From contig JBHGNT010000017.1 of assembly GCA_043228905.1 (NCBI GenBank), positions 14,322,001 to 14,386,000 on the forward strand: 64,000 nucleotides of DNA, written 5' to 3'. Positions 5,886-64,000 of the stretch are shown in pieces. A model generated the notes under the pieces. It made no database searches and was not told where the DNA came from. It worked only from the letters and a program-made list of their open reading frames with translations. This DNA comes from Azolla caroliniana. Its lineage: Eukaryota; Plantae; Polypodiophyta. How positions within the stretch are numbered: the stretch's first letter is position 1; the number at the start of each line of letters is the position of its first letter. The translations under genes were made by a program, and so were the position numbers.

Positions 5886-6054
5886 GGGCTATCTATATCA
5901 CCGTTTTATATTTCTTTCAAATGGTGATATATAATTTTGTGATAATAGTTTCGATAGACCAAGAAGTGATATTATATATCTTTGACGACATTATTCATCG
6001 ACCCACCAATCACATTATATGCATGTGGCAATGTGAAGCATACACAAATTTAAT

Positions 6055-6140
6055 TCATACCTATCGGATTCAACCCAACGACCTAAGGATGTCTATATGT
6101 ACACTACAATCCTCTGCTCTACCATCTGAGCTAAGGTTGG
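6055..6140 (-). pseudogene. tRNA-Tyr(GUA) copy 1 with 13-nt intron, degenerate
   Basis: Reverse complement ccaaccttagctcagatggtagagcagaggattgtag[tgtacatatagac]atccttaggtcgttgggttgaatccgataggtatga matches plant cytosolic tRNA-Tyr; T-loop and acceptor stem damaged. Confidence 0.85.
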
Positions 6141-6692
6141 ACTATGAATTTAAATTTAATTGATCATTTAATATTATAATATTCTAATGTTTCCTTGTCT
6201 ATGCATGTATGAACCTGTTCACTTTATATCACCGTTTTGTTTTTCTTTGAAATGGTGATTTATAATCTCGTGATAACATTTTCCATAGACCAAGACGTGA
6301 AATTATATCCAAAACGTAGAAATAGAAGTAGCATAGTGCCGAAAGTTTCTAATAATAGACCAACTAATCATCAGATATACAATCTTAGAATACGAAGTGA
6401 TGTCCTATTTATACCGAAAGTAATGAAGAAAGGAAAAACCAACAACTTGTGAAACTCAAACCCTCGACATAAGGATGTGGATACATGTATTGTAATTTGC
6501 TCATCGACCCAAGAGTGTGTATACATACATTGTTATTTGTTCGTCGACCCACATAGGTATATAAAGAGTTCGAAATGTTTCTGTGCATGTATGTTCAAAT
6601 CAAACTAATTTATATATCTTTGACGACATTGTTCATTGACCCACCAATCACATTATATGCATGTGGAATTGTGAACCATACACAAATTTAAT

Positions 6693-6778
6693 TCCGACGT
6701 ATCGGATTCGAACCAACGACCTAAGGATATCTATACATAAACTACAATCCTCCGCTCTACCAACTAAGGTAAGGTTGG
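6693..6778 (-). pseudogene. tRNA-Tyr(GUA) copy 2 with intron, degenerate
   Basis: B-box GGTTCGAATCC intact; D-stem 5' strand cctt instead of gctc. Confidence 0.85.
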
Positions 6779-7289
6779 ACTATAAATTTAGATTTATTAA
6801 CTATTTAGTATTATAATTTTCTATTGTTTCCTTGTTTATACACCAATGAGTTTTTTGACTTCATATCACCCTTCTTTTTTTCTTTCAAATGGTGATTTAT
6901 AATCTTGTGATAATATTTTCCATAGACCAAGATGTGATATTATATCCAGAACATAGAAATACAAGTAGCATAGTGCCAAAAGTTTCTAATAATAGACCAA
7001 CTAAGCATCATATATGCAAACTTAGAATTCAAAGTGATGTTCTATTTATACCTAAAGTAATGAAATAAGGATAAACCAAAGACTTGTGAAACTTAAACCC
7101 TCGACATAAGGGTGTGTATACATGCATTGTAATTTGTTCGTCGACCCACATAGGTATGTAAAGAGTTTGAAATGTTTTTGTGCATGTATGTTCAAATCAA
7201 ACTGATTTATATATCTTTGCCAACATTGTTCATCGACACACAAATCACATTATATGGATATGGCAATGTGAAGCATACAGAAATTTAAC

Positions 7290-7374
7290 TCTAACCTGTC
7301 GGACTCGAACCAATGACTAAGGATGTCTATACGTACACTACAGTCCTCCGTTCTACCAACTAACCTAAGGTCAG
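7290..7374 (-). pseudogene. tRNA-Tyr(GUA) copy 3 with intron, degenerate
   Basis: gaggaCTGTAG-intron-atcctt intact; 1-nt deletion in the variable loop; D- and T-stem mismatches. Confidence 0.85.
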
Positions 7375-7926
7375 ACTATGAATTTAAATTTAATTGAATA
7401 TTTAATATTATAATATTCTACTGCTTCCTTGGGTATGCACTTATGAACTTGTTCACTTTATATCACCGTTTTGTTTTTCTTTCAAATGGTGATTGATAAT
7501 CTCGTGATAACATTTTCCATAGACCAAGAAGTGAAATTATATCCAAAACATTGAAATACAAGTAGCATAGTGCCAAAAGTTTCTAATAATAAACAAACTA
7601 ATCATCATATATAGAAACTTAGAATTCGAAGCGATGTTTTATTTATACCTAAAGTAATGAGATAAGGATAACCCAAAGACTTCTGAAACTCAAACCCTTG
7701 ACATAAGGGTGTGTATACATGCATTGTAATTTGTTCGTCGACCGAAGCGTGTGTATACATACATTGTTATTTGTTCGTCGACCCACATAGGTATGTAAAG
7801 AGTTTGAAATGTTTTTGTGCATGTATGTTCAAATCAAACTGATTTATATATCTTTGCCGACATTGTTCATCGACACAGAAATCACACTATATGCATGTGG
7901 CAATGTCAAGCATACACAAATTTAAG

Positions 7927-8012
7927 TCTGACCTGTCGAACTCAAACCAACAACCTAAGGATGTCTATACGTACACTACAGTCCTCCGTTCTACCAACTA
8001 ACCTAAGGTCAG
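7927..8012 (-). pseudogene. tRNA-Tyr(GUA) copy 4 with intron, degenerate
   Basis: Anticodon arm intact; B-box mutated (tttgagt). Confidence 0.85.
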
Positions 8013-8198
8013 ACTATGAATTTAGATTTAATTGAATATTTAATATTATAATATTCTACTGTTTCCTTGGGTATGCACCTATGAACTTGTTCACTTTATA
8101 TTACCGTTTGTTTTTCTTTCAAATGGTGATTGATAATCTCGTGATAACATTTTCCATCAACCAAGAGGTGATATTATATCCAGAACATAGAAATACAG

Positions 8199-11100
8199 TG
8201 TTGAGAGACAAGCTCAACATCAGCCGGATCGGCTAAAGAAGCCGAGGACCGGATCGGTTGGGACCGATCTGTTAGGCTAAATGCGTAAACCGGTGCGCAG
8301 ACCGGTGCGTAGGTAGGGCCGGATCGGTGCGGAAACCGAGAGGCCGTTAGGAAAGATATTCCGTGAGGAATATATTTGGGAGTTAGTGTAGGAGCTCTCA
8401 ATGAGCATTGAAGTACTGTCAGTACTTCGGTCAGTCCTTCTAGGACTTGTATAAAAGTGTTCACTGAGCACGTCTTATGTACATATTGAGCATTATTGTT
8501 GAACATAGTTTTTTTGTGTGTTTTCACTCTCTCTGTCTCTTCCGCGTATACTGTGTAAGCTCAAGCTTTCCATTAAACCTGAGTTTTCTTCCTTCTGTTC
8601 GGTCTTCATACTTGCTTCCGCACGCTACTTTTTACATGGTATCAGAGCGCGAGGGTTGAGAACCTCTCTTCAGCCGAACCTCTCTCCAGCCGATCCAGCT
8701 TGACGAAGAAGAACAAGAAGAACGATGGATAGAGGCATGGCGAGCTCGCTTCCAACAGAGAAGCTCGACAGAACCAACTACGCATCTTGGTCCTACAAGA
8801 TGCACCAGTACCTGCTCGAGCACGACTATTGGAGTTATGTCGAAGGAGCTAATGAAGCGGCACCCGAATCGACACACAGAGACTTCCCATCGTGGGAGCA
8901 ATCGGCGAGCAGGTTATTATACTGCTTCGCGTCGTGTGTGGGCGAACAGCTATTGAGCTATGTTCGGGATGCAAAGACGCCGAAGGGTGCGTGGGAAAAT
9001 CTGAAGAAGATTTTCGCCGCGAGCACCACAGCCAGGAAGCTTCAGCTCTGACAGGAGTTGAGCAACCTATGACAACGCGACTTGTCGGTGGCGGACTATA
9101 CCTCGAAGATCAAGGATATCTGCGACTCCCTCGCCTCCATAGACGTGAACATCGAGGAGAGCGAGATGGTCCAGGTTTGTCTCGGAGGTTTGGCGTCAAA
9201 GTTCGGAGCGTTCCGAACGGCCGTGTGTACCCGGGAGAATACGCCGTCCTTTTTCGACTTACAGTCAATGCTCCTGGTAGAGGAGAACCACGCGGGTGCG
9301 TCTACAAGCACGCACACCGACAGCAGAATGTTGTACACGGAGGGCGATAGGCCCCGTGGATGTGGAGGACGAGGCGAGTCGGTGCGCAATGGAGGCGGCC
9401 GATGAGATCAAGGAAGAAGGCACCGAAGTGATGCCGACAACAACTCCGGACCCTCCGGAAACAGGGGGAGTCGAAGCAATCAGAACCGGCAAGGGAAGGC
9501 CATCGCGGAGTGCCAGTACTGTGGCAAGAAAGGCCACAGGGAAAGTGAGTGCTGGAAGAAGCGCGCCGAGTCGGAGAGAACCGGCTCCGGACATACCGAC
9601 AAGGGAAATCGGCAGCGATCGCACTACTACCGAAGACTCCGGGAGAGCCGGAGAAGGGTTTGCCTTCGTGACGAGACACGAAGCAAACTCAATGAAACAG
9701 AGCACCTCGAGATCAGACGAGGTGTGGTACGTAGACTCCGGCGCGTCAAACCACATGACGAGCCATAAGGAGTGGTTCTCGTAACCGATACAACCTGGAG
9801 TAGTCGCAACTGGAGATGACATTCCGCATCCGATCGCAAATGTCGGAGAAGTTCCCCTTAGCCATGTCAGGCAGAAAGGGAAACTCATGAACGTGTTGCA
9901 CGTTCCGACAATTACGAAGAACTTGGCCTCGGTCGGACAGATCGTTGACCAAGGGATGGAGGTTCGGTTTACACACCTCGGATGCTTCATTGAGGAAGAA
10001 GGCCGTGTGATTGCGCAAGGGCGCAAAGACGGGAGGATGTTCATCCTCGACTCCACTGACGGCGGCACCGCAATGTTCGCGAAGGGACAAAAATCCGAGT
10101 CGGACATCGACTTGTGGCACAAGCGGATAGGCCACGTCAACTACCAGCAGCTTCAAGATCTGCAATCGAAACAGGTAGTGTTCGGACTGCCCAAATTTAG
10201 TGGCCGAAAGGCACAAATTTGTGAAGCCTGCCAGCTCGGGAAGCAACACCGACTTCCTTTCCCCAACGAGCGAAACCGGAGCCGGAACAAGCTCGACCTT
10301 ATACACTCCGATGTATGGGAGCCAGCACAAAATGTTAGTCTTGGCGGGAGCCGATATTTCGTCTCCTTCATCGACAACCACACGCGGCACACATGGATTT
10401 ACCTCATTGAGAGGAAGAGCGAAGTCTTCGACTCTTTTCAGGACCTCAAAGGGTTCGTGGAAACGGAAATAGGACGAAAGATCAAGTGCTTGCGGTCGGA
10501 TGGCGGGAAAGAGGATTTCTCCGGTCAATTCAACGGTTATCTACAACAAATAGGAATTCGGCGCAAATTCAGTTGTAGATACACACCTGAGCAGAACGGC
10601 GTGGCCGAGAGGAAGAATCGGTCAGTTATGGAAGCGGCACGGGCAATGCTGGAGGAGAAGAGCTTGCCCAAGTTCTACTGGGCCGAGGCGGTAAGGACCG
10701 CGGTATACATCCAGAACCGGATCGGAGACAAAGTGTCGGCGCACGAGCTATATTTCGGAATGAAGCCGAACTTGCGACACTTGAGGGTGTTCGGTAGCAT
10801 TGCGTATGTGCATGTACCGAAGGAAAAAAGGAGGAAGCTGGACCCAAAGGCCGAGAAATGCATCTTGGTTGGTTACTAGGACGAGCAGAAGGGCTATAAG
10901 TGCTATAACCCTCGCACCAAACAAGCGCGTGTTAGCCGTGACGTTGTGTTTGACGAGTCCGCATCCTGGTGCCAACCCCCGACTCCGCACCCCGACTCCA
11001 ATCCGAGCTCTGACGATGAGGTCAGTGAGGCCGAGATGCCTCCGGATGAGCCCGAAATCGAGACCCGCGAAGAGAGTCCGATTTCACTCCGTTTAAGTGG

Positions 11101-13984
11101 ACCGATTGGACGACTGAGTCGGTACGACCAGTCCGATGAAGAGCCGGCGAGTAGTGGAGACTCGGTCATGCATTCCCCGCGTAGGAAGCCGAGGAGACGG
11201 CTTACGCGCGAAGAGGAAGGGAAGAAGAAGGTGTCGGATTCCGGCACGGATAGGAATGGGTCGGACCGACACGAGTCCGAGGGAAGCAGTGACGGACCTT
11301 CAGGAACGAAGTCCGCGTCCGCCGGGAAGACCTTGACATCAGCAAATGACCGATTGCGCCGATCTATCCGCCAAAAGAACCCAGTTGTGCGGTTCGGATA
11401 CAACGAGTACATGGCGCATCACTATGCGTACATGACCCGTGTAGCGGAAGTGCGTCAGCCGGAGAGCTACGCAGAAGCGGCTAAAGACGCAACTTGGCAT
11501 GCCGCGATGGAAGAAGAGATGCACACATTGGCAGAGAACGAGACTTGGGACTTGGTTGACGCATTGGCAGAGAACGAGAAGAAGGGTGTGAAACCGATCG
11601 GGTGTAGGTGGGTGTACAAGGTCAAGTACAACACCGATGGCTCGGTCAACTGGTACAAGGCTCGGCTAGTGGTAAAGGGCTACACGCAGAAACACGACAT
11701 CGACTATGATGAGACATTTGCGCCGGTCGCGAAAATGACGATCGTCCTCGCAGTAGCTGCAGTGAAGGGGTGGCACTTACATTAGATGTATGTAAAGAAT
11801 GCGTTCCTGCAAGGTGACCTTGAGGAACAGGTGTACATGGTACAGCCCCCCGGATTTCACTCTGGAACGAACTCCTCAGCGGTATGCCGATTGAAGAAGT
11901 CCCTTTACGGACTGAAGCAAGCCCCGCGTGCCTGGAACGCGAAGATCACGCAACAACTGTGTCGGATGGACTTCGTCACGTCAAAATTGGACTCTTCCTT
12001 GTTCATCCGGAAAGGTCGACTTGGACCGGTTAGTATTTTGCTATATGTTGATGACTTGGTCATCACCAGCGCCAACCTAGGAGAAATCGACCGCGTGAAG
12101 ATCCAGCTTGCGGCATCGTTCGACATGAAGGATCTGGGGGACCTTCATTACTTCCTCGGGATCGAAGTGATCCGTACCCCCGAAGGCATATTGATCAGCC
12201 AACGTCACTGTGTGCTGAGTATGCTCTTCAAATTCGGGATGGCCGACTGTAAGTCAATCGTGACTCCTCTGGACAGAACCGTCAAGCTTTGTCCCGACAC
12301 AGGAACGGTATGCGACCCGACGAGGTTCCGGCAACTTGTCGGAAGCCTCATATACTTGACCATCACCCGACCCGACCTCAGTTATCCGGTCGGAGTGATC
12401 AGTCAGTTCATGGCGCGACCTACCGAGGAACACCTTTAGTGTGCACAACGCATACTTCGGTATGTCAACGGCACTAAGGACCGGGGACTGCTATATCGGA
12501 CCGGTGCAGCCGCGCAGTTAGTCGGCTACACCGATGCTGATTGGGCTGGCAACGCCGCCGATTGCCGATCCAAGTCCGGATACGCGTTCTCCCTCGGGAG
12601 TGCCACGATCGCGTGGAGCAGTAAGAAGAAGCCAATAGTTGCACTGTCGAGCACCGAAGCTGAGTACCGAGGAGCGGCTGTGGCGACATGCGAAGCCATA
12701 TGGTTGAAGCGGCTACTTAAGGACCTGCAAGAGGAGGTGTCAGATCCGACGACGATCTACTGCGACAACCTCAACAGCATCCAGCTGGCGAAAAACCCCA
12801 TTTTCCATGCACGGACCAAGCACATTGAGGTGCACCACCATTTCGTCCGTGAGCGTGTCCTTTCCGGTGAAGTCGAACTTCAGTACGTGTCGACGGATCG
12901 GCAGACTGCCGACATCTTCACAAAGCCTCTTGGTCTGGACAAATTGCGACAATTCTCCGGTGCGCTCGAATTGCGTCACCTCGACGTGCCAAACTTGAGG
13001 GGGAGAACAGTCCCGAACGACCAAGCAAAGCAGCAGGAAAGGAGCGGAGGCCGCGACACCGAGTCGGTTGACTCGGCTGTTGACTCGGTTGTCGAGTTCG
13101 ATTTCGGATCGGCTGAAGAAGCCGAGGGCGGACCCGCGGAAAAGTCTGAAAGAGAACAGAAGGGGAGCAGCCAAAGGAGAGAGCTGAAGCCAACCACGCA
13201 TGGGGAAGATGATGCCACCAAGGGCGAGAAGACCGAAGACGAGTTGGAGATAGCCTACTCGAATGGGAGCGAAAACAGATCGGAGGTAGCCCAGTCGGTT
13301 CGGATGTTTGATTCAGATACGTTGAATCAACCGAGGCCCAAACGGAAGAAAAGGCAGCAGGAGAAGCGTCAAGACCGCAACAGCAGAAGAGCTGATACGG
13401 GCCGCATGAGCAGACAAGCCGACCGGAAGGGTCGAAGCGCGCGGAGTCGAACAGGTCGAGGAGCGTGAGTGAGGCGTGAAGCCAGGAGGAACTGGAGCCG
13501 TGAGCCCAAAGATCCCGAAGAGCCTCAAGTTGAGCTTGAGGGGGAGTGTTGAGAGACAAGCTCAACATCGGTTGGATCGGCTAAAGAAGCTGAGGACCGG
13601 ATCGGTTGGGACCGACCGGTTAGGCCGAATACGTAAACCGGTACACAGACCGGTGCGTAGGTAGGGCCGGATCGGTGCAGAAACCGAGAGGCCGTTAGGA
13701 AAGATATTCCGTGAGGAATATATTTGGGAGTTAGTGTAGGAGCTCTCAATGAGCATTGAAGTACTATCAGTACTTCGGTCAGTCCTTCTAGGACTTGTAT
13801 AAAAGTGTTCACTGAGCACGTCTTATGTACAGATTGAGCATTATTGTTGAACATAGTTTTTTTGTGTGTTTTCACTCTCTCTGTCTCTCCCGCGTATATT
13901 GTGTAAGCTCAAGCTCTCCATTAAACCTGAGTTTTCTTCCTTCTGTTCGGTCTTCATACTTGCTTCCGCATGCTACTTTTTACA
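8199..13984 (+). mobile_element. Full-length but inactivated Ty1/copia (LTRs 8199-8636 and 13547-13984; gag-PR-INT-RT-RH-tail)
   Basis: 438-bp LTR pair TG...CA with about 18 substitutions by eye. TSD TACAG at 8194-8198 and 13985-13989. PBS TGGTATCAGAGC 8637-8648; PPT 13538-13546. Motifs WYVDSGASNH, LRSDGG, LLYVDD, ARTKHIEV; several nonsense codons. Confidence 0.97.
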
Positions 13985-14316
13985 TACAGGTAGCATAGCG
14001 CCGAAGGTTTCTAATAATAGACCAACGAAGCATCATATATACAAACTTAGAATATGAAGTGATGGTCTATTTATACCTAAAGTAAAGAAATAAGGATAAA
14101 CCAAGGACTTGTGAAACTCAAACCCTAGACGTAAGGGTGTGTATACATGCATTGTAATTTGTTCGTTGACCCACATAGGTATGTAAAGGGTTTGCAATGT
14201 TTTTGTGAATCTATGTTCAAATCAAACTGATTTTTATATATATTTGATGACATTGTTTATCGACCCACCAATGACATTATATGCTTGTTGCAATCTGAAG
14301 CATATGCGAATTTAAG

Positions 14317-14402
14317 TCCGACTTGTCGGATTCGAACCAACGACCTAAGCATGTCTATACGTACAGTACAGTTCTCCGCTCTACCAATTGAGCTAAGGTC
14401 GG
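14317..14402 (-). tRNA. tRNA-Tyr(GUA) copy 5 with intron; best-preserved copy, probably still a pseudogene
   Basis: Reverse complement ccgaccttagctcaattggtagagcggagaactgtac[tgtacgtatagac]atgcttaggtcgttggttcgaatccgacaagtcgga. A and B boxes essentially intact; mismatches in anticodon and acceptor stems; C instead of purine at position 37. Confidence 0.6.
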
Positions 14403-14599
14403 ACTATGAATTTAGATTTAATGGACTATTTAAATTTGTAATTTTCTATTGTTTCCTTGTCTATGCATCTATGAATTTGTTGACTTTATATCACCGTTTT
14501 GTTTTTCTTAGAAGTGGTGATTTAGGGTTTACGGTTTCCGCACATGTATTTTCAAATGTACCTTTTTTATTTATATATCATTGACGACATTGTTCATTG

Positions 14600-16260
14600 T
14601 TTTTAAAGATAATGGCACCATGTTTTGAGCGCATGTATAACTGCAAATAATTCCTTTTCTTGAATGGTATACCGACATTGAGCAGAATCAAGTTTCTTAC
14701 TCTCGAATGCTATTGGTTGACCATCTTGATATAAGACATCACCTATAGCATAATCGCTTGCATCGGTTTCAACTTGAAAAGGTTTTGAAGGATCGGGTAA
14801 ACGAAGTGAAGGAGCCTTGCACACTAGGTCCTTGAGTTCCTTAAAGGCGAGGTCTAGTGTAGCATTCCACACAATAGGTTTTGTAGACTTACGCATTTGA
14901 CCTTTTAGAAGATCAGTAAACGGCATCGTCAATTGGGAGTAATTACGAAGAGATTTTCGCAAAACCCAACAAAACCAAGGAATGATTGAACTTCTCGAAG
15001 GTTCCAAAGAGTGGGCCAAAGCTTGATTTTCTCGATGCGAGAAGGATCAATTTCAACTCCTCGTTCGGTTATGAGATGTCCAAGATAAGTAATTGATTTC
15101 TTGAAGAACTCACATTTTGAGATCTTCGCGTAAAACTGTTTGTCACGCAATGTTTGTAAAACAAAGCGGACATGTTTAGCATGTTCTTATAATGTACGAC
15201 TATAAACTAAAATATCATCCAAGAAAATAACGAAAAAATTTCCAAGTTGTTCTTGGAAAATGTCATTCATTTCTTGTTGAAATGTAGCCGAAGCATTGGT
15301 TAAACCAAAAGGCATAACCAAAAACTCATAATGGCCATAGCGCGTACGAAATGCCGTTTGAGGAACATCGTCCTCACTTATATGTATTTGATGGTAGCCA
15401 GTACGGAGATCAAGTTTCGTAAAATACCCAGCTCCCTGGAGACGGTCAATTAGATCGTCAGACCGGGGCAATGGATACAAATTCTTGATCGTCACTTTAT
15501 TCAAGCGTCGATAATTAATACACATACGCCATGTGCCCTCTTTCTTTTTAACCAAGAGAACTGGTGCCCCCCATGGAGATTTGCTATAACGTATATAACC
15601 CATTCGTAAATAGTCCTTGAGTTGCTTAGCTACCTCATCCTCTTCAAATCGACTTAAGCGATAAGGAGGTACACTTATTGGTGCAACGCCAGGTACAATA
15701 TCTATACGATGGTCTGTATTACGTTTAGGAGGTAAACCATCTGGTAGTTCACTCGGAAAAACATCACGAAAATCATTTAAGATTTCATGAAGTTGTTGTT
15801 GTTCAAAATATGTTAATTGAACCGAGACATTATCGATATTGTAAACGTGAATGTCCGAATCAAGTACACAATAAAATAGAGTAGAACAAGACAACTCGGA
15901 TATTGATGGACACGAGGAAACAATCGAGAGGGATTGTTTTTTGACACATTGAATAAAATGAGTATAATCATTCAGTACAAAAGTTATTGAATGATGAACC
16001 CAATCAATAAATAAAGAAGAGTTTTTATTATAAAACTAGGGATAACCCAATATTACATCTATGGTACAAAGATTCATTACATGGAAGTCTATTTCCTCTA
16101 TTTAAGTATCAATAGAAATTTCTAATGAATGAATCACCCCGTTGATGTATTGTACCATCAGCCAAGTGCACCGTGTAGGTGTGATCACTTACGGTGGGTT
16201 GGATTCCCCATATCTAAACCAAACAATCATTGACAAAGTTGTGTGAGCTTCTTGAATCCC
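14600..16260 (-). mobile_element. Internal fragment of a chromovirus-like Ty3/gypsy pol (protease remnant, RT, RNase H), no LTRs
   Basis: ORF 15187..15894 ([45 protein letters not shown]), 14929..15150, and 14603..15019 (ETDASDYAIG, EKELFAVIHAL). Confidence 0.9.
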
Positions 16261-16289
16261 TTGCAATGCGAAGCATATGTAAGTTTATG

Positions 16290-16375
16290 TCCGACTTGTG
16301 TGACTCGAACCAACAACCTAAGGTTGTCTATACAAACACTACAGTCCTCCGCTCTACCAATTGAGCTAACGTCGG
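16290..16375 (-). pseudogene. tRNA-Tyr(GUA) copy 6 with intron, degenerate
   Basis: D-arm and CTGTAG intact; T-stem 3' strand cacac disrupted. Confidence 0.85.
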
Positions 16376-16500
16376 ATTATGAATTTGAATTTAATTGACT
16401 ACATACTATTATAATTTTCAACTATTTGCTTCTCTATGCACATATGAACTTGTTGAATTCATATCACCCTATTGTTTTTCCTTCAAATGGTGATTTATAA

Positions 16501-16925
16501 TATTACATGTGCATGAACACTATTATTAAAGGAAAACGCATAATAGATAAAGTGATTCATGCATATCTAGCATGCATGAAAACTTTAGAAAAAGCATGAT
16601 GCTTTCCTTGTGGGAAGATATACTCAACGTCTCCCATCATTATATAAAGGTGAGGAGCAAATTGTAATATGTTATTATATAAAGGTGGGTTGATTAATAT
16701 ATTATACTCGTGGGATTCACGAGTTTCTATCTACTTCTCTCTTTCAATCTAAAATCATGTTCTTATCTAAGTATTGATTAATACACTATACTTGTGGGAT
16801 TTAGAGTTTCCGTTATCTCTCTTACAATATATTCTTAAATAGATTAATCTCAAATTCTTCCTCCTAGTCCAAAACCCTAGCGGTTCCCACCTCATTCACG
16901 CAACGATCCGACGCCAAAAGGCACG
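16501..16925. other. Unassigned AT-rich insert within a repeat unit, possibly an LTR fragment
   Basis: Not part of the unit consensus; contains duplicated attatataaaggtg and gtgggatt...gagtttc modules. No TSD seen. Confidence 0.3.
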
Positions 16926-17039
16926 CACCGTGCATTTATTTTCAAATCAAACTTATTTATATATATTTGAGGACATTGTTCATCGACCCACAAAGCATAT
17001 TATATACAAGTTGCAATGTGAAGCATAAGGAAGTTTAAG

Positions 17040-17125
17040 TTCGACTTATCAGATTCAAACCAACGACCTAAGGATGTCTATATGTACACTATAGTCCTCT
17101 GCTCTACCAACTGAGCTAAGGTCAA
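17040..17125 (-). pseudogene. tRNA-Tyr copy 7 with intron, degenerate (anticodon ATA)
   Basis: D-arm intact; anticodon GTA>ATA; B-box tttgaat. Confidence 0.85.
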
Positions 17126-17450
17126 AGTATGAATTTAGATTTAATTGACAATTTAATATTATAATTTTCATCTACTTCCTTCTGTACATATGAATTTGAT
17201 GACTTTATCTCACCTTGTTGTTTTTCCTTGAATGGTGATTTATAATCTAGTGATAACATTTTCCATAGACCAAGAAGTGGTATTATATATAAAACATAAA
17301 AATAGAAGCACCATAGTGACAAAATTTTCTAATAATAGACCAACTAATCACAATATATACAAACTTAGAATACGAAGTGATGTTCTATTCATACCTAAAG
17401 TCATGAAATAAGGATAAGCCAAAGACTTGTGAAACTCAAACCCTCGACAT

Positions 17451-17725
17451 ACACATTGAATAAAATGAGTGCAATCGTTCAATACAAAATTAATTGAATG
17501 GTGAACACAATCAATAGATAAAGAAGAGTTTTTATTATAAAACTAGGGATAACCCAATATTACATGAGTGGTACAAAGATTCATTACTTGGAAGTGTACT
17601 TCCTCTATATAAGTACCAATAGAAATTCCTAATGAGTGAATTACCATGTTGATGTATTGTATTCTTCCATCAGCCAAGTGCACCTTATAGGTGGACGGAA
17701 TAGTTCTCGGCTGCAACTGAGTCTG
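17451..17725 (-). mobile_element. Second gypsy protease-region fragment, paralogous to ~15945-16180
   Basis: Shares acacattgaataaaatgagt...aaagaagagtttttattataaaactagggataacccaatattacat...ccatcagccaagtgcacc. ORF 17543..17731 (VHLADG..., HVILGYP). Confidence 0.75.
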
Positions 17726-32866: not shown

Positions 32867-33908
32867 GTGTCATATCAAGTCTTCAAATGTGACTATTTTG
32901 ACTTTCTGAAAAGATTATCAAACAACAAGAAGTTATGACACTCATGAACAATTACAATGCACATACTTAATATACAACAAACTTTTATCCACCTTCATAC
33001 ATGAGGATGGAGATGGGTTTATGAATAGCAAACTCATATTACTTCAATTACATCATTAGCTTATGCCTATAAAAGTCATGATTGGGAGTTTGTTCAATTT
33101 TTAATTGCATAATCATATAAACCCTAAAGGTTACACAATGTAGAGTATAGATGTTTGCCTAGTGCTATGGATGGTGTGGAGATCATATAGAATTTGTCAC
33201 AAGGGTTGTCAACACTATTTTAAGTAAAATGATGCCCCTCTTATCTTTTGCATGGAAAATTTACCACTTATGGATCTATGTTTAGCAAATTTCGCCATTG
33301 CTTTAATGTGCATTGAGTGATGATTTAGCCAAAGGAAGCTTTAAATAAGGTTTTCCATCACAATTTTGTCTTAGATAGACTAAATATAAGGCATTCAAGG
33401 CCCCACATCATCATGCTTCTAAGATGGACTGCACGTTAGAGTAATATCACACGCAAATCAATCAAATAAGTCTAATCATGAGCCTTCCATTTGTTGCCTC
33501 AACAATTCAACATGGATGTAAGATGCAAGAGAATCTCGAGTATTCATGACTCAAAACCTAATTCATTCTATATGTTTTAGCAACATTAATATGTAAGATA
33601 GGGAAGAGGATTTCCCAAAATAGCCATACAATTGAACGTGAAAAGCTTGGAGGCATCAAAAATTAAGTATTGCCAATAAAAGAGGATGTCCCAATATTCT
33701 ATGTTTAGCATGTGATCGCTATACACATCTGAGAGGGGATGGCAATGGTGACTATGTACATGATCATGGGTGTGCAAGCTCATTGTTATATGAGATCCAT
33801 AACAACCTCACTTCTATTGTATTGATCCATATAACATACATTCTTTGTATTTTGTTGCATCCAAGAAGACATTCCAATCCATATACTCAAAATTCCATCC
33901 TATCATCA

Positions 33909-35367
33909 CTAATGCCGAACGGACTTATAAAAGTGTCTTGTTCTTATGCTTAGCGCAACACTAACACAAGATCCTGCAACACACGTAGCGGCCATTACAA
34001 TGAAACTCAGGCGAAAACAATGTGCACCAGTGCAAGATCCATTCTCCGCTTCCAAATCATACAAGTACCCGGTAACCTTGATGGAGAGTATATATGAGCT
34101 AAGTGGGCTTGCCACTGCAATAGTATTGAAAATAGAACCAAAGCTCTTCAATCCAAAAATCTCTGATGCCGTCGCCGGCATTAATGACCATTGTGCCCCA
34201 TAACATGTCCCTATTAGTATAGGCCCTACATATAGGGCACCTGGAATTGCTAAAGCTATAATTGCATGCCCAATCGCCATGATCCCCAATGTGATCATTA
34301 TGAATACAGGCCTTGGGACCTTATTTGAATGAAGAAAGAGCTCTGATATATACCCACCCCCCAATCTACCAGAGAAGTTCCATATGCTCCACAAGGAGAC
34401 AAAAGTAGTGACTTCTTGTGAACTGTACCCTAATGATGATCCCAACTGGCTCATGTTATTGATGGTAGTGAGCCCAGATCCCATCCCGCAAGCTGAAGTG
34501 AAGAATAGAAGCCAAAAATCTAATGAAATCATCGACTCCAAGAGGCCGATATTCCTAGCCATCAAAGTTTCATCGGCCACCTTCGAAGCTTCACCTAGCA
34601 GGACAATTTTTTCCTCTAATGTGGAGGTTTCTGTTGGTGATAGGAGACACTCTTTTGTTTCATTCTCATCACCATCAAAACCTGTTTTAAAAATCACCCA
34701 TAAAGGAGACAACAGGATAAGGACGATTCCACCCAAAATCACGGCTCGCCATTGTCTACCCACATCAATGTAGTTCTGAATTAAGATAACAACCAATAGG
34801 TAACCAGCGAGAACAAATAGAATGGCCGAGAACACATTGAGCCGCGTTTTCTGATCACCGTTTCGGACCTCTGGCATCGGCCGGATGATAAACATGGCGC
34901 ATAGGCAAGATATAGGCGTAATAATAGCCATTAGAAGAGGAAAATTTTCACCTTCGGTTCCAAAAGAAACATAGTAAACTTGCACTAGCACGGCTCCAGC
35001 AATTCCAAGTGCTCCCTACAAGGGGCATTAGAAGACAAATTCATGTTTCTGATTTCATGGATTTCCAATGGAACCCAAAATAATGCACCACATGTGTACA
35101 ATCTACTTGGTACATAAAGGAAGTGATTAAGGTAGGTCTTAAATGACTATACATATAGTTTTGATGTAGATCTTAATGAAGCCGGAATGCCTTGAAGGCA
35201 TGAAGACGTTTAGAAAAATGCTCAGTTCTTGTATGCTAATATGCATACTATCCAATACTTTCCATCTCTCTCTCGATTTCTCTTTTTCTAGAGGAGAATC
35301 ATGTAGCATATATACTGGTCCTAAAGGTCATATGGTCATGTTATTGTACTGCCAAGGATGTTAAAAG

Positions 35368-58099: not shown

Positions 58100-61000
58100 T
58101 GTTAACTCTTCGGGCCGGACAATGGCCTAACACAGGGTGTCTACGGGAGACACTTCACCAAAGGGTGTTACGGCAACCGGATTCGACTTCAACGCTTAAT
58201 CCGACTTAATCAAGTTACTTATTAGGATCTTCTTCATAACACGCGTAAGATATAACAATTAAGATAGAACGGCAATTAACACAGAGATATAACAACGCTT
58301 AAGCTTTCATTAATTAGCCGCTAACTATTACATTGTATCCGGGCCTTTAAATAGGTTTCCGGTCTGTATTACAAAACGGTGCCCTCCGCACCTGTTCGGG
58401 ATCGGTCCGGATCCGGAACGGCATACCGTTTTGGTCCGTCTGTCCACACTCATAGCTTAATTACAACCACATTCCTACTACTTAATTAGCTCTCTATTTC
58501 CCACTCTGGACTCCTTTCCCGGCCGGTAACACATGGCACGCCCGTGGGACAGTACCTTGTACGTCGAATCCACAACCGACCCTTGCTATTCTTCGTCCAA
58601 AATGTCCAGAATGCTTTGTTCGAGAGGCTCCAATGGTTCATCTAGAAGTGGTTGTTGTTGTTGCTGCTCTGTTGCTGTCTACTGTGGCGGGTCCGTTGGT
58701 GGTTGCTGCGGCTGCTCCTCCGGTTGTGGCTCTGACACCGGCGTCGTTGTCGTTGCTCCCTGCGTCGTGGTGGTCTCCGGTTGACTGGTTCCCGGCTGGC
58801 CCTCAACCGGCGACGGTTCCTCATCACTAAGGTTAACCATTGTCGCTTCCCGTGCTTTTTCTTCCCGCACCCTGGACCACTCGTAGCTTTCAAACTGGAT
58901 TTGAGCATCCAGCCTATCATCGTCCAGCTGAGCTATGAGCTGCTTGACCTGCGCCAGCTGTTCATCTGCCAGGACTTGGAAGTCGTCGGCCAACTCGTCC
59001 CGTATGGCGGTGAAGTCCTCGGAAGTCAATGTATAACAGTCATCTCCTTCCTTCCGCCGGTTTGCCACATCCGCCCGTAGCAACTGGAGTTCCGCCGCGT
59101 TTTGTGCCCACTTTGTCCACCATTTTATGGAGCTTTCATCAATCAAGTGTTTTGTCTGATTCAGCCATGCCCGGAGAATGGACTGAGTCCGGCTCGTTCC
59201 CAATTGCGATTTGGTTTCCGCCGCTTGCCGTTCCTCCTTCAGTTGTTTGATGATTTTGACGTTGTCCTCCGCCTGCGCCTTGTAATGCGTCAATTGCCTT
59301 TGATATGTGCTTTGTAATTTCTGCAATACTGTTGACGCTCTCTCTTTGTCTTCCTGCTGCTGCTTCTGGAGCTCCATCCGGACCTTCTCCGCCTCTTCCA
59401 AGCGTCTTGTATTTTCCGCCCGTTCGTCGGCGATCGCCGTCGCGGCCCGATCAACTGCCTGCTGGAGCTCGGCCATCCGTTCTTTATGCTCCGTTTCCAG
59501 CCGTTTGTAGTCCTGGTGCAGGTGCTCAAAATCATCCGTCTTTTGCTTGAGTCGTGCGTTGATCTGACGATGGGCCCGGTCCTCACGGTCCTTCTGCTGG
59601 CGGAGCTCTTCCTTTAGCCGTTCAATCTCTGTTTCCGTCGTTTTCCGCAGCTTGTCCTTTTCCTGCAGCACTTTGTCTCTCTCCTCCTTTAGCCGGTCGT
59701 ACGCCTGATGGCCTTTCCGGAGGCTCTCCTCTACCCGGCGGAGGTTCTCAGCAGTCTTCTTTAATTCGGCTTCGGCCGCCGTCTTCAATTCTTGTTCATG
59801 GCTCCTTAGCGCTTCTTGTGCGGCAAGTTCCTCTCTCAATTCCGCAAGCTCCTGAGCTTGCGCCGCCTCTCTCGCCGGAACGGTTTCTGTTGCCGGGGTC
59901 TTATTGCTATGTACAAGTCGTTCCGTTTCATTATTCTGTACACTTACCGGAGTCACCGGTGATTGGATCCGTATTTTGGCCATCTCTGTTGTGACCTGAT
60001 CCAAGTCTTTTTCAAGGCACCGGATTCTGGACCGGGCCGTCTCTAGTTGTTCGGTTGTGACGAGCAACCGTTCGCTTTGCGCTGTTTCTTCCGCCTCTAT
60101 ATACCCCACTGCTCCGACTATCTGTTCGCCTATCCACCGGAGCCACAGGTTACCGGTGCCTTGTTGTGCTTGCACGGAGGTTTGATAGATGGGCTCACTT
60201 GTAGAGGGGTGGTCCCGCCTGGTTGCGCCGAGTTGCAGTTCCGTTTCTGCCCGTGGACCATCCTGCTGTCCTGGTTCCCCTTGCGCTTCTTCTTGGCTGA
60301 CCGAGGGAGGCTGCAGTGACCTTTCCGGCTCTGGCGGGATGGGACTTGCCGGTGTTGCCGGTGGTGCCGGGGCTTCTGTTTCCGGTGCCATCTGTACCGG
60401 TTCCGGTCCCTTCCTTGGCGTGGGAGTCTCAGTATGGGGAGCCGGTGTTCCCTCCGTCTGAGGGTCCGAACGTTTCCCAGCTGTCTCAACGGTCCTTGCC
60501 GACGACTGTCGTTGGAGGTGCTCCGTAGGCTCCTCCTCTATTTCCTCCTCCTGAGCTCCGGCATTGAGTTTTGCCGCCAAGGGGTCCACTTCTCGATTCA
60601 CCGGTCGGCGGAGTGTGACCTTTACGGGCCGTGCCGGTGGTTCCTCGTGCGCCTCCGTTGGGCGCTTCCGGCTTCCGCTTCCTGCTGCCGCCTGTTCTGC
60701 ATCCACCGCCTGTTCGGCATCCACCGCCTTTCCCTTACTGGCCTTAGAGGCCAACAGATGTTGCCGTTTGGAAGCCGTCCTTGGGGTGCCGTCCGGCACT
60801 CTTCCTCGCTTCTTGGGCTGGACGGTCTGAACGGGTGGCACCAGCAAGGTGAGCCACTGCGTTACGGCGTGCCATATCCTTCGTCCGTCTCGGCCTTCTT
60901 TGCCGTCTTTGCCTCTGACGATCTCGATCGCCGCACACAACCCGTCTGCAATCAATACCGGCCAATCCACCTTGATCCCTTCATAGGTGGCGATGATCAT

Positions 61001-64000
61001 CCCTGCCCGGTTCTGCGGCATGACAGGGGGTCTAGGGTACATGTGGTCGTATTCATGGAGCACACGAGCAATTTCGCGGAACAACATATCCCCGCCGCCC
61101 TGTGTCCGGTAGCCGTTGCTGGCTAGAGAGTACTCACCAAAATACCTGATGAGTTGCTCCGGGGTTGGATTGTCGATCGTGAGTATGCCTCCCTCCGGAA
61201 GGCCTGTTAACGCTCGAATCGCCTCTGCCGTTATGACCTCTGTATCAATTTCCTTGATCACTTTGTCAGCTTCTTTGTGTGGCGGTACTTCCATCATCAT
61301 CAAGAAGCCCTCGAGCTCGTGTTGCTTCAGCCATGTCTTGGCGGCTTCCAACAGCGTTTGCGGGTCCATCTCTGTGTCGGGGTCGGATTGCGGTGGCGAG
61401 GATGGATGGTGATGAGAGTGGGGTTGAGAAAGAGAGAGTTTAGAAGGCGGGGGTTCTCTGTGCGCAGGTTCTCGTCTGATGATCTTGCAGCGTTTCGGTT
61501 CTTCTGTGCTCCTGGGTTCGCGAAAGTAGAGGGTCTCTACGCGCAATGGTTTTTGTCTGTGCATTCTGGCGCCTTTTTCGAGTTTGTGCATGTCGCGTAC
61601 TTAAAATAGCATTATGTCCTGTGGTGGCGCTTTAAATGCCCACTACGTACCTTTTCGCTCCACGCTCTTTCATCCATTCGTTCCTCGCTTTTGCATGATT
61701 GTTTTTTCATTCCTCGCTTTTATTTATTTATTTATTTATTTATTTTTATAACAGTTATTATTATTATTATTGTGACGTCACTTGTCCGTTGGTCCTCCCG
61801 GACCCTTACCGGCCTCGTTCTCCCCAGTTACCGGCTCGCCTTCCCTACCGTCTTGGTGGTTGCTGTCGGTCCTTTGCTCAAACGGGTTCTTAGGCATCGG
61901 TCCTCTATATGCCTTTAACCGGAATCCGTTGACCCATTTGCCCAGCACTTCGCCGGCAAGTGTCCCCAACTGGTAGGACCCATTATACTCCCGTGTTAGC
62001 CAATATGGTCCGGTCCATCTAAACCTTAGTTTACCCGGCATCTTGCCCATCCGGGTTTGGAATACTAATACCGGTTTGCCGATTACGAACATTTTTTCGT
62101 TACCTTTCCTGTGCCGGTCGACGAATGCTTTCCGTCGCCGTTGCTCCAATTCTAAATGTAGGATGCTGGCCAACCGTTGCTCCTCCAACTCACACAGCGC
62201 TGTCAACCTTATTGTCTCCGACTCCTTCTCGTTCAGCCATTCTCGTAGCTGGATCCGTAAGCTAGGTACTTGAAATTCTACCGGCATGACCGCCTCGAGT
62301 CCAAATGCTAACCGGAACGGTGTTGTTCGGATGCTCGTTTTGTATGCCGTCCGGTATGCCCAAAGCGCGCTATGTAGCTTTGTGTCCCAATCCGTCCGGT
62401 TCTCGTTGACGATCTTCTGAAGGATATTCTGGAGCGTCTTGTTTGTTGATTCCGCTAATCCGTTCGCCTGTGGATAGTAAGGTGTGCTTCGTTTGTGGAC
62501 CACGACATAGAAGGTCGTTAGGCTTTCTACTACTTGTCCGAGAAAGTGCCCCCCTTGGTCACTTATCAATTCAATGGGGCATCCGTAACGGCACCAGATG
62601 TACTCATATAGAAACTTTGCAGTTGACGCAACAATGTTATCCCGTAAAGCTTTGGCCTCCACCCATTTCGTGGTGTAATTCGTAGCAACGATAACGTACC
62701 GATAACCCGTTCTCATTGCCGGTGGCTTGAATGGTCCTACAAAGTCCAGCCCCCACTTTTGGAATGGCTCGAGTGGTAGTACCGGCTGGTGTGGCATACG
62801 AGCCTGCTCCGTTGGCTGGCCCATTCTCTGGCATAGGTCACATTCTTTTCGTACCGTACCGCATCTCTTAATGTCGTTGGCCACCATAAGCCACTTTGCC
62901 ATATTTTCCTGGCCGTCGCATCTCCGGCATAGTGACCTCCGGCCACTCCGCAGTGGGCTTCCCTCAGTATCAGTTCCTTTTCATCATTGCGCACCGCCCG
63001 TCTCCATATGCCGTCAGCGCCCTTGTGGTACAGTGTGTCTTGCAGTAAGCAGAAATGTCGGCTTTGTACCACTAGGCGTTTCCGTTCGTCCCGGTTCAGC
63101 TCTTCCGGAGGCAGTCCTGTGCTCAGAAACTGGTGCATATTTGTGAGCCACTTGTCTTCCTGGGCCACTGTCTCATCTGCTGCCGTCTTCGTAGTGACTC
63201 AAAACAGCTCTACATCCGGAAACTCATCGGCTACTCCGTCACCCGTCTCTCCGGACTCTAATCGGCTTAAGTAATCCGCTACGTCATGCTGTATACTGGG
63301 TCGGTGGAATATTTCAAACTCGAACTCCTGTAACAATAAGGTCCACCGGGCCAATTTGCCGGTGAGTGACGCCTTGGACACTAGGTAAAGGAGTGCCGAA
63401 TGATCTACATGGAAGGAAAACTTCCTTCCCAATAGATAGTGCCGAAACTTTGTCACACTGTAGATCATTCCTAGAGCTTCCCGTTCCGTAGTAGAGTAGT
63501 TCCGTTCTACTTGGGATAGCTTCCGGCTAGCATAGTACACTGGCCGGTACCACTTTGGTTCCGTAAGCTGCATCAGTACGCTTCCGATTGCAATGTCGGA
63601 GGCGTCCACGAACACGTGAAATTCTTTACTCCCATCCGGAGGTTGTACTACCGGTGCCTGCGACAATAGTACCTTGAGGGCCTTATATGCCCTATCCTCA
63701 GTATCGGTCCACTGGAATGGTGTCCGATGTACGGCGACATGCAACGGTGTAGCCAGGTCGGCCAAGTATCGGAGCATCCGGCTGTGCCACCGGATCTGGC
63801 CTAAGAACCGGCTTAATGCCTTTGCCGTTGCCGGCGCCGGTGCTTCTAATATGGCTTTCACTTTGTCCGGGTCGACTGCAATACCTTCCTGGCTCACGAT
63901 ATGTCCTAATAAAGTTCCACTGGACACGCCAAATATGCACTTTGCCGGATTCAAGCTTAGCCGGTACGCTCTACACTTTTCTAGACAAAGACGGAGGTGC
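58100..64000 (-). mobile_element. Ty3/gypsy (Athila/Tat-like non-chromovirus) 3' portion: RT end, RNase H, integrase, extra ORF, 3' LTR 58100-58531
   Basis: ORFs 63199..63954 (FVDASDIAIG, TEREALGM), 62737..63168 and 61778..62902 (WGLDFVGP, ISDQGGHF, WTGPY). LTR has TGTTA...TAACA inverted ends and interrupts copia gag at 58099. Confidence 0.92.
58679..61591 (-). CDS. 970-aa extra ORF of the gypsy element (N-terminal folded region, P/E-rich linker, long coiled coil)
   Basis: Uninterrupted 2.9-kb ORF between integrase and the 3' LTR, same strand as pol; E/K/Q/R-rich heptad-like region at about aa 510-900; no obvious signal peptide or transmembrane segment. Confidence 0.8.
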   Translation of the reverse strand: MHKLEKGARMHRQKPLRVETLYFREPRSTEEPKRCKIIRREPAHREPPPSKLSLSQPHSHHHPSSPPQSDPDTEMDPQTLLEAAKTWLKQHELEGFLMMMEVPPHKEADKVIKEIDTEVITAEAIRALTGLPEGGILTIDNPTPEQLIRYFGEYSLASNGYRTQGGGDMLFREIARVLHEYDHMYPRPPVMPQNRAGMIIATYEGIKVDWPVLIADGLCAAIEIVRGKDGKEGRDGRRIWHAVTQWLTLLVPPVQTVQPKKRGRVPDGTPRTASKRQHLLASKASKGKAVDAEQAVDAEQAAAGSGSRKRPTEAHEEPPARPVKVTLRRPVNREVDPLAAKLNAGAQEEEIEEEPTEHLQRQSSARTVETAGKRSDPQTEGTPAPHTETPTPRKGPEPVQMAPETEAPAPPATPASPIPPEPERSLQPPSVSQEEAQGEPGQQDGPRAETELQLGATRRDHPSTSEPIYQTSVQAQQGTGNLWLRWIGEQIVGAVGYIEAEETAQSERLLVTTEQLETARSRIRCLEKDLDQVTTEMAKIRIQSPVTPVSVQNNETERLVHSNKTPATETVPAREAAQAQELAELREELAAQEALRSHEQELKTAAEAELKKTAENLRRVEESLRKGHQAYDRLKEERDKVLQEKDKLRKTTETEIERLKEELRQQKDREDRAHRQINARLKQKTDDFEHLHQDYKRLETEHKERMAELQQAVDRAATAIADERAENTRRLEEAEKVRMELQKQQQEDKERASTVLQKLQSTYQRQLTHYKAQAEDNVKIIKQLKEERQAAETKSQLGTSRTQSILRAWLNQTKHLIDESSIKWWTKWAQNAAELQLLRADVANRRKEGDDCYTLTSEDFTAIRDELADDFQVLADEQLAQVKQLIAQLDDDRLDAQIQFESYEWSRVREEKAREATMVNLSDEEPSPVEGQPGTSQPETTTTQGATTTTPVSEPQPEEQPQQPPTDPPQ

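Follow-up and report, generated by a model that had tools for sequence, protein, structure and literature searches.

Tandem clusters of tRNA genes are known in plants, among them the Ser-Tyr-Tyr (SYY) cluster of Arabidopsis, which is heterochromatic and silenced (PMC7544208, PMC11700998). The Arabidopsis genome carries 27 such units together with a Pro cluster, and its clustered Ser, Tyr, and Cys genes are likewise heterochromatic and silenced (PMC7544208); the SYY cluster is reactivated in root-cap cells (PMC12308677). Across the plant surveys consulted, clustering of Tyr genes has been reported only as Ser/Tyr heteroclusters of eudicots (PMC11700998, PMC13437025, PMC13578239). For ferns, the tRNA literature that we found gives counts only: in Azolla filiculoides, tRNA genes number above 7500 and tRNA-like or pseudogene sequences above 10,000 (10.1101/2021.12.21.473619, PMC13578239). 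The present study concerns a 64,000-nucleotide stretch from another fern, Azolla caroliniana (assembly GCA_043228905.1, contig JBHGNT010000017.1, positions 14,322,001 to 14,386,000 of the forward strand), referred to here as the window and numbered from its first letter. Between positions 5894 and 17451 lie seven sequences that resemble intron-containing tRNA-Tyr(GUA) genes, and we consider it very probable that this locus is the relic of a tandem array of nuclear tRNA-Tyr(GUA) pseudogenes, produced by amplification at the DNA level and since decayed and invaded by transposons.

Like the SYY cluster on Arabidopsis chromosome 1 and similar eudicot clusters, the window locus shows head-to-tail, DNA-level amplification of an intron-containing tRNA-Tyr(GUA) unit with its flanks (PMC7544208, PMC12308677, PMC11700998, PMC13437025), and the SYY and window arrays both lie in repeat-rich, probably heterochromatic surroundings. 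The window array, however, is a Tyr-only homocluster built on a unit of ~600 bp in a fern, whereas SYY repeats Ser-Tyr-Tyr in 1.5 kb in a eudicot. Moreover, the SYY genes are nearly identical, retain conserved cis-elements, and can be reactivated, whereas the window copies are all damaged, have no nearby oligo-T, and show no constraint. The feature is ordinary in kind: a decayed, Tyr-only, fern example of the known plant tandem tRNA clusters. In being degenerate nuclear sequences of the sort excluded from curated tRNA sets, the window copies also resemble the fern and gymnosperm tRNA-like sequences of PlantRNA 2.0; that source gives counts, and we did not find tandem organization, isotype, or unit structure described there (10.1101/2021.12.21.473619).

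[quoted passage not shown] SINEs are dispersed, retroposed monomers that end in a tail, are bordered by target-site duplications, and have neither a tRNA intron nor an upstream flank. The window copies, in contrast, form a tandem arrangement and are tailless, with intron and both flanks retained.

Results

Seven tRNA-Tyr Copies with a Common Intron

An earlier note on this DNA, made from its letters alone, had described seven co-oriented, intron-bearing sequences resembling tRNA-Tyr(GUA), and the Rfam tRNA model RF00005 indeed has exactly seven matches in the window, each of them on the minus strand and spanning the model in full (positions 1-71), at scores of 34.6-46.1 bits against a gathering score of 29. 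A 13-nt insert with the consensus TGTACGTATAGAC stands after position 37, directly behind GTAG (position 37/38), in 7/7 copies; the anticodon is GTA in six and ATA in copy G. The 28-nt pattern formed by anticodon and intron has six matches in the window at three mismatches or fewer, where 0.00 would be expected by chance, and when the copies are aligned with 40 nt upstream and 20 nt downstream the mean column identity is 90%. The upstream TATA-like element that the earlier note had pointed out, TATTATAA, occupies -41 to -34 in an A/T stretch extending to -25, and is kept in six of the seven copies. The copies, each a predicted pseudogene for reasons given below, are as follows (scores are Rfam bits):

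6055-6140, minus strand: predicted tRNA-Tyr pseudogene A; 36.3 bits; two acceptor pairs broken; B box GGGTTGAATCC; A box T16>A
6693-6778, minus strand: predicted tRNA-Tyr pseudogene B; 34.6 bits; two acceptor pairs and one D-stem pair broken; A box G10>C; B box intact
7290-7374, minus strand: predicted tRNA-Tyr pseudogene C; 36.2 bits; 1-nt deletion in the variable region; one D-stem and one T-stem pair broken; called Tyr(gta) by ARAGORN -i
7927-8012, minus strand: predicted tRNA-Tyr pseudogene D; 38.6 bits; D-stem pair 11-24 broken; B box GGTTTGAGTTC (C56>T, C61>T)
14317-14402, minus strand: predicted tRNA-Tyr pseudogene E; 46.1 bits, the best preserved; broken pairs 6-67 (acceptor) and 30-40 (anticodon stem); base changes G37>C and G15>A; B box intact
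16290-16375, minus strand: predicted tRNA-Tyr pseudogene F; 35.8 bits; one acceptor, one anticodon-stem, and two T-stem pairs broken
17040-17125, minus strand: predicted tRNA-Tyr pseudogene G; 40.3 bits; anticodon ATA; B box GGTTTGAATCT; 10/10 lesions C>T or G>A

The consensus of these copies scores as a tRNA-Tyr, as had been expected of it: with introns allowed (-i), ARAGORN identifies it as tRNA-Tyr(gta) and places a 13-nt intron in the canonical position. Run in the same way at default stringency, the program calls two of the seven real copies, C and G (the latter with anticodon ata), and without introns it reports no tRNA in the window, a blank that arises because introns are then disallowed. 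In a local fold of the consensus the intron pairs with the anticodon (CUGUA with UAUAG). When the consensus is simply folded to minimum energy with ViennaRNA, no cloverleaf results whether the intron is included or not, and we therefore relied on the covariance model and ARAGORN.

Organization of the Array

With one unit as query, BLASTN finds the array family in four intervals (5894-8198, 13985-14597, 16263-16501, and 16930-17451) and no further members anywhere else in the window. These intervals, and the sequences that separate and border them, are:

5894..8198, minus strand: array block 1, comprising truncated unit A, units B, C, and D, and the 3' part of E up to the Copia site; guanine-plus-cytosine (GC) content 32%; BLASTN and unit alignment
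8199..13984, plus strand: Copia long terminal repeat (LTR) retrotransposon inserted in unit E, with LTRs at 8199-8636 and 13547-13984 and TG..CA ends; repeat search, LTR alignment, and Pfam
13985..14597, minus strand: array block 2, comprising the 5' part of E, tRNA copy included, followed by a partial upstream unit (unit positions 519-638 and 143-193)
14601..16262, minus strand: old, AT-rich Ty3/Gypsy fragment spanning the protease, reverse transcriptase (RT), and RNase H region, without LTRs; Pfam RVT_1 at 15187-15894; GC 37.5%; interrupts the unit of copy F
16263..16501, minus strand: truncated unit with copy F; BLASTN and Rfam
16502-16929: unrelated insert of 428 bp between F and G
16930..17451, minus strand: truncated unit with copy G and ~325 bp of upstream spacer; BLASTN and Rfam
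17452..17693, minus strand: second Gypsy protease-region fragment, 88% identical to 15945-16181 (BLASTN), fused at unit position ~308 at the upstream end of the array

The complete units measure 598 bp (E), 638 bp (D), 596 bp (C), and 638 bp (B), in agreement with the ~600-640-bp unit and conserved flanks described previously, and unit A has an internal deletion. The difference in length is due to a single 40-bp internal duplication, present in B and D. Whole-unit alignments are 86-91% identical and Kimura two-parameter (K2P) distances between units are 0.10-0.25; GC content is 32-34% in the array, 51% in the tRNA part, and 30% in the spacer. In total the locus holds ~7-8 units (~4.4 kb), several of them truncated, at 77-91% identity and without sign of homogenization. 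The alternation of 638- and 597-bp units suggested a two-unit (~1235-bp) higher-order repeat, which we do not claim; the tree described below pairs adjacent copies (A+B and C+D), and the pattern is mixed. In the unit spacers, ~220-300 nt downstream of the tRNA, there is a recurring conserved hairpin with a 6-bp stem, ACCCTTATGTC(A/G)AGGGT, and behind it a T-rich stretch (minus strand, 7694-7710 and 7097-7113); these hairpin-plus-T-rich, "terminator-like" sites fit a bacterial-type pattern.

The units abut directly, head to tail. Because they do so, because both flanks are conserved and the intron is kept, and because the array units have no poly(A) or A-rich tail and no target-site duplication of their own, amplification at the DNA level is to be preferred over SINE-like retroposition, as the earlier note had argued. 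Its description of the locus as a tandem array needs qualification: four copies (five when the Copia element is disregarded) are in strict tandem, whereas F and G belong to truncated units separated from the rest by transposon fragments and from each other by the 428-bp insert. Four copies lie within 1958 bp (6055-8012), the fifth adjoins them only after removal of the Copia element, and the density is ~1.6 per kb; published rules for tandem clusters ask for at least three tRNA genes per kb or at least five within 5 kb, in the same orientation, and count high-confidence genes only (PMC11700998, PMC13578239). Measured in this way, the locus falls short of three per kb and reaches five within 5 kb only with the transposon taken out.

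The interruption of unit E can be reconstructed in full. The Copia element is flanked by a 5-bp target-site duplication, TACAG, at 8194-8198 and 13985-13989, inside unit E, and when it is excised in silico blocks 1 and 2 join seamlessly and the unit is restored exactly. This fairly young element has LTRs of 438 bp each that are 95.9% identical (K2P 0.043; 16 transitions and 2 transversions), a smaller distance than those between units, and it therefore arrived after the amplification. It has a GC content of 54%, against 32% in the surrounding array, and a primer-binding site, TGGTATCAGAGC, which we take to be the usual initiator-methionine tRNA type of Copia elements. The Pfam domains gag_pre-integrs, rve, and RVT_2 fall on broken open reading frames (ORFs), and since the coding region is split into several of them the element is probably defective. 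The two 88%-identical Gypsy protease fragments lie ~1.5 kb apart, one of them running on into RT, which points to either a local rearrangement or a second truncated insertion.

Decay of the tRNA Copies

In the consensus every stem pair is standard, whereas each real copy has between one and four non-standard pairs, so that 15 of the 147 cloverleaf cells are unpaired (89.8% pair). The copies differ from the consensus by 5-10 lesions each, and 42 of the 62 lesions in total (68%) are C>T or G>A; this matches the copy-specific damage, mostly of that type, noticed previously. Invariant bases have been lost as well: C56 is changed in A, D, and G, G10 in B, and G37 in E. Copies B, C, and E have a perfect B box and G alone a perfect A box, so that no copy retains both boxes intact, and within 120 nt downstream none of the seven has an oligo-T terminator, the nearest TTTT lying at +121 to +513. 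Covariation on the cloverleaf does not exceed that of shuffled alignments, 75 of 500 of which reach the observed level. CG-to-UA changes at acceptor pairs 1-72 and 2-71 were considered as compensatory changes and rejected: both steps are C>T/G>A and pass through a G-U pair, and covariation is no higher than in the shuffles.

Per-site divergence from the consensus amounts to 0.10 for the tRNA. The 60-nt flanks stand at 0.13 (p=0.10) and the spacer as a whole at 0.071 (p=0.04, with the tRNA the faster), and we accordingly find no signal of purifying selection on the window tRNA relative to flanks or spacer. A faster rate of change in the tRNA than in the spacer is what its higher GC content and the mutation bias together would lead one to expect. 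The strongest point against living copies is that the tRNA part has been left unprotected. The B boxes tell the same story: three of seven survive, where neutral decay at 10% per site predicts 2.4, and therefore nothing suggests that TFIIIC sites are being kept. Taken together, these features lead us to read all seven copies as pseudogenes, none of which would now be able to yield a normal tRNA-Tyr, and they uphold the part of the earlier note that saw here a decaying tRNA cluster, every copy being damaged and the tRNA part free of constraint.

The direction of the substitutions suggests what befell the array. G/C>A/T changes occur at 0.45 per G/C site and the reverse at 0.13, and the bias is strongest at CpG, with 28 C>T events on 28 consensus CpG cytosines. 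Such a spectrum is the signature expected of methylated, silenced repeats, and it is from this that we infer methylation. Several points weigh against this picture of a methylated, silent, and dead array. The polarity of the substitutions depends on a consensus of only 4-10 copies. The CpG observed/expected ratio of the present-day array, at 0.84-1.02, is not strongly depleted, and the argument for methylation therefore rests on the polarized substitution spectrum. That the array is silent is likewise something that we infer, and since three B boxes and one A box are perfect it might still bind some TFIIIC. Finally, the absence of a terminator is a trait of the whole family and by itself a weak criterion rather than proof of death, because intact relatives of the same family (family 2, below) also have no nearby run of four T.

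Related Arrays on Metagenome Contigs

A scan of metagenomes by the T-arm variant yielded seven contigs (L001-L007, assemblies ERZ1034377-ERZ1034411), and a scan by the exact anticodon-intron pattern yielded none. The seven contigs carry 21 Rfam tRNA matches, among them intact tRNA-Tyr genes at ~60 bits. The consensus exons of the window are identical to those of intact genes on L003, L006, and L007, the T stem GTTGG/CCGAC included. The earlier note had singled out this paired stem as a variant; it is present, yet it is not peculiar to the array, and because intact genes of a related fern share the consensus exons it belongs to the ordinary tRNA-Tyr of this fern lineage.

Two families of arrays can be told apart. 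In family 1 (L001, L002, L004, and L005) the intron is TTGCCCTACTGTG, the upstream sequence is CAA-rich, a run of T5-6 stands at +31, and intact genes alternate with a dead copy and half-tRNA fragments. On L001, L002, and L004 the intact genes are identical, the dead full-length copy scores 30.5 bits, and the half copies consist of the 5' 36 nt joined straight to the T arm. In family 2 (L003 and L006) the introns are TGTAGATATAGAC and TGTACATCTAGAC, a TATA-like element lies upstream, and no TTTT occurs within 100 nt or more downstream, even beside intact copies. The window unit is a family 2 member; alignments of its flanks and spacer with L006 and L003 cover 280-750 bp and are 65-74% identical. 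In a maximum-likelihood tree built from the tRNA and 60-nt flanks, from which half-tRNA fragments and copies truncated at contig ends were excluded, and rooted at the midpoint only, the window copies group in a single clade (98/95) whose sister is the L003 copies (89/87), inside family 2, and family 1 stands apart (100/99); adjacent window copies pair up, A with B and C with D.

The arrays of L003 and L006 (ERZ1034409 and ERZ1034377) share with the window their exons, the type of 13-nt intron, the TATA-like element, and the lack of a downstream T4, and the L003 unit measures ~620-670 bp. They differ in that each has at least one intact gene (60.2 bits) and in that the tRNA of L006 is conserved above its flanks (0.085 versus 0.139, p=2e-5), neither of which holds for the window. 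L006 (1-11765) consists almost entirely of tRNA-Tyr units, with ~20 tRNA-like copies at an irregular spacing of 550-1800 bp; a single copy, at 388-473 (60.2 bits), is fully intact, and most have no nearby TTTT. The earlier note had asked whether the unit exists only here, and homologous units on contigs of a related fern answer that it does not. We place the window locus as one divergent representative of a wider family of tRNA-Tyr arrays in this fern lineage, some other members of which still hold intact genes.

Surroundings of the Array

The wider window consists mostly of retrotransposon debris and one host gene. The only clear host gene seen is represented by an exon of an NFD4/nodulin-like transporter near 34 kb (Pfam Nodulin-like and NFD4_C), at 33909-34991, whose best named relatives are ferns (Adiantum 56%, Ceratopteris 51%; angiosperms at most 48%). 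Its best match overall, at 92% amino-acid identity, is on contig L008 (ERZ1034403), from the same series as L001-L007, and positions 33738-35032 of the window are 93.2% identical to that contig in DNA, this being the one locus tested. The metagenomes from which the contigs come would accordingly hold the DNA of a close fern relative; alternatively, what matches there may be a duplicate that has diverged within the same species. Pfam gives no match for an ORF of 970 amino acids at 58679-61591 (minus strand), and the protein collection contains no exact counterpart of it; because an integrase-bearing ORF (61778-62902) adjoins it, it probably belongs to a retrotransposon.

Discussion

The analyses presented here are most consistent with a history in which a tandem tRNA-Tyr array was built by duplication of DNA and then abandoned. 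The founding unit would have comprised one intron-containing tRNA-Tyr gene, its TATA-like upstream element, and a spacer of ~500 bp rich in A and T. This ~600-bp unit would have multiplied as DNA in head-to-tail fashion, with unequal crossing-over or replication slippage as the likeliest mechanism, and a 40-bp internal duplication would have given rise to the alternating 638-bp and 597-bp units. Once maintenance of the array ceased, the copies would have gathered changes independently, mainly C>T/G>A. Units would then have been truncated and LTR retrotransposons would have entered, the old Gypsy fragments first and the Copia element, whose LTRs differ by 4%, later.

Other histories have to be set against this one. 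The earlier note had raised the possibility of a tRNA-derived satellite with a role in chromatin or small RNA production, in which the A and B boxes recruit TFIIIC in the manner of an insulator or an extra-TFIIIC (ETC)-like site, or in which Pol III, having no terminator, reads through and so feeds small interfering RNA (siRNA) and heterochromatin. The TATA-like element kept upstream of six copies, the three intact B boxes, and a region full of transposons would all suit such a role, and since the whole family, intact relatives included, has no nearby oligo-T, its transcripts would be long. Against this, B-box survival matches the neutral prediction, conservation of the tRNA part does not exceed that of the spacer, and the few, partly truncated and unhomogenized units are far from the long, homogenized, many-monomer arrays by which a satellite is recognized; our literature search on tRNA-derived satellites in plants turned up only papers on organelle genomes. 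We consider a satellite function very unlikely, and the suggestion that the locus supplies TFIIIC or Pol III sites or small RNAs finds no support here. A broader version of the idea concerns the family rather than the locus. Its TATA-like element, its TGTAC.T.TAGAC-type intron, and the lack of any oligo-T within at least 100 nt, even in intact copies, could mark a fern-specific Pol III class with long read-through transcripts, which would be small-RNA precursors or TFIIIC-bound boundaries rather than tRNAs for translation, the window representing a late stage of the life cycle. Because the terminator is missing family-wide even where the tRNA is intact, some small chance of a role outside translation exists, and we regard this proposal as speculative and very unlikely.

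The Arabidopsis precedent invites a different question, namely whether the window could hold a cluster that is still functional and conditionally used, mostly silent and activated when the demand for tyrosine codons is high. The isotype and the tandem, intron-containing layout are those of the cluster reactivated in the root cap (PMC12308677), and six of seven copies keep the GTA anticodon. Every copy, however, has mismatched stems or changed invariant bases (such as C56, G10, and G37), the Rfam scores of 35-46 bits fall short of the ~60 that intact genes of this lineage reach, the first 120 nt downstream contain no terminator, the tRNA shows no excess conservation, and transposons have been inserted within units; current or conditional use for translation is accordingly extremely improbable. 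Nor would we readily attribute the array to spread by a mobile element, be it a SINE of tRNA origin or a transposon with a tRNA array inside it, in place of local tandem duplication. The array is embedded among retrotransposon fragments, one of its ends is fused to a Gypsy fragment duplicated 1.5 kb away, and related units exist at other loci. Yet the units abut directly at a constant period and retain intron and both flanks with neither A-rich tail nor target-site duplication of their own, the seven copies are each other's closest relatives, and the Gypsy and Copia pieces interrupt units rather than flank them, and mobile spread is likewise extremely improbable. A relic of local amplification thus remains the explanation that we favor.

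By itself the locus matters little. For annotators it carries a caution, as ARAGORN without introns misses all of the copies and with introns calls two dead ones, one of them with an ATA anticodon. The array also shows the fate of a tandem tRNA cluster that is no longer maintained: decay from GC to AT, fastest in the GC-rich tRNA part, truncation of units, and invasion by transposons. Furthermore, at least part of the large tRNA and pseudogene counts of ferns may stem from tRNA-Tyr homoclusters at varied stages of such decay.

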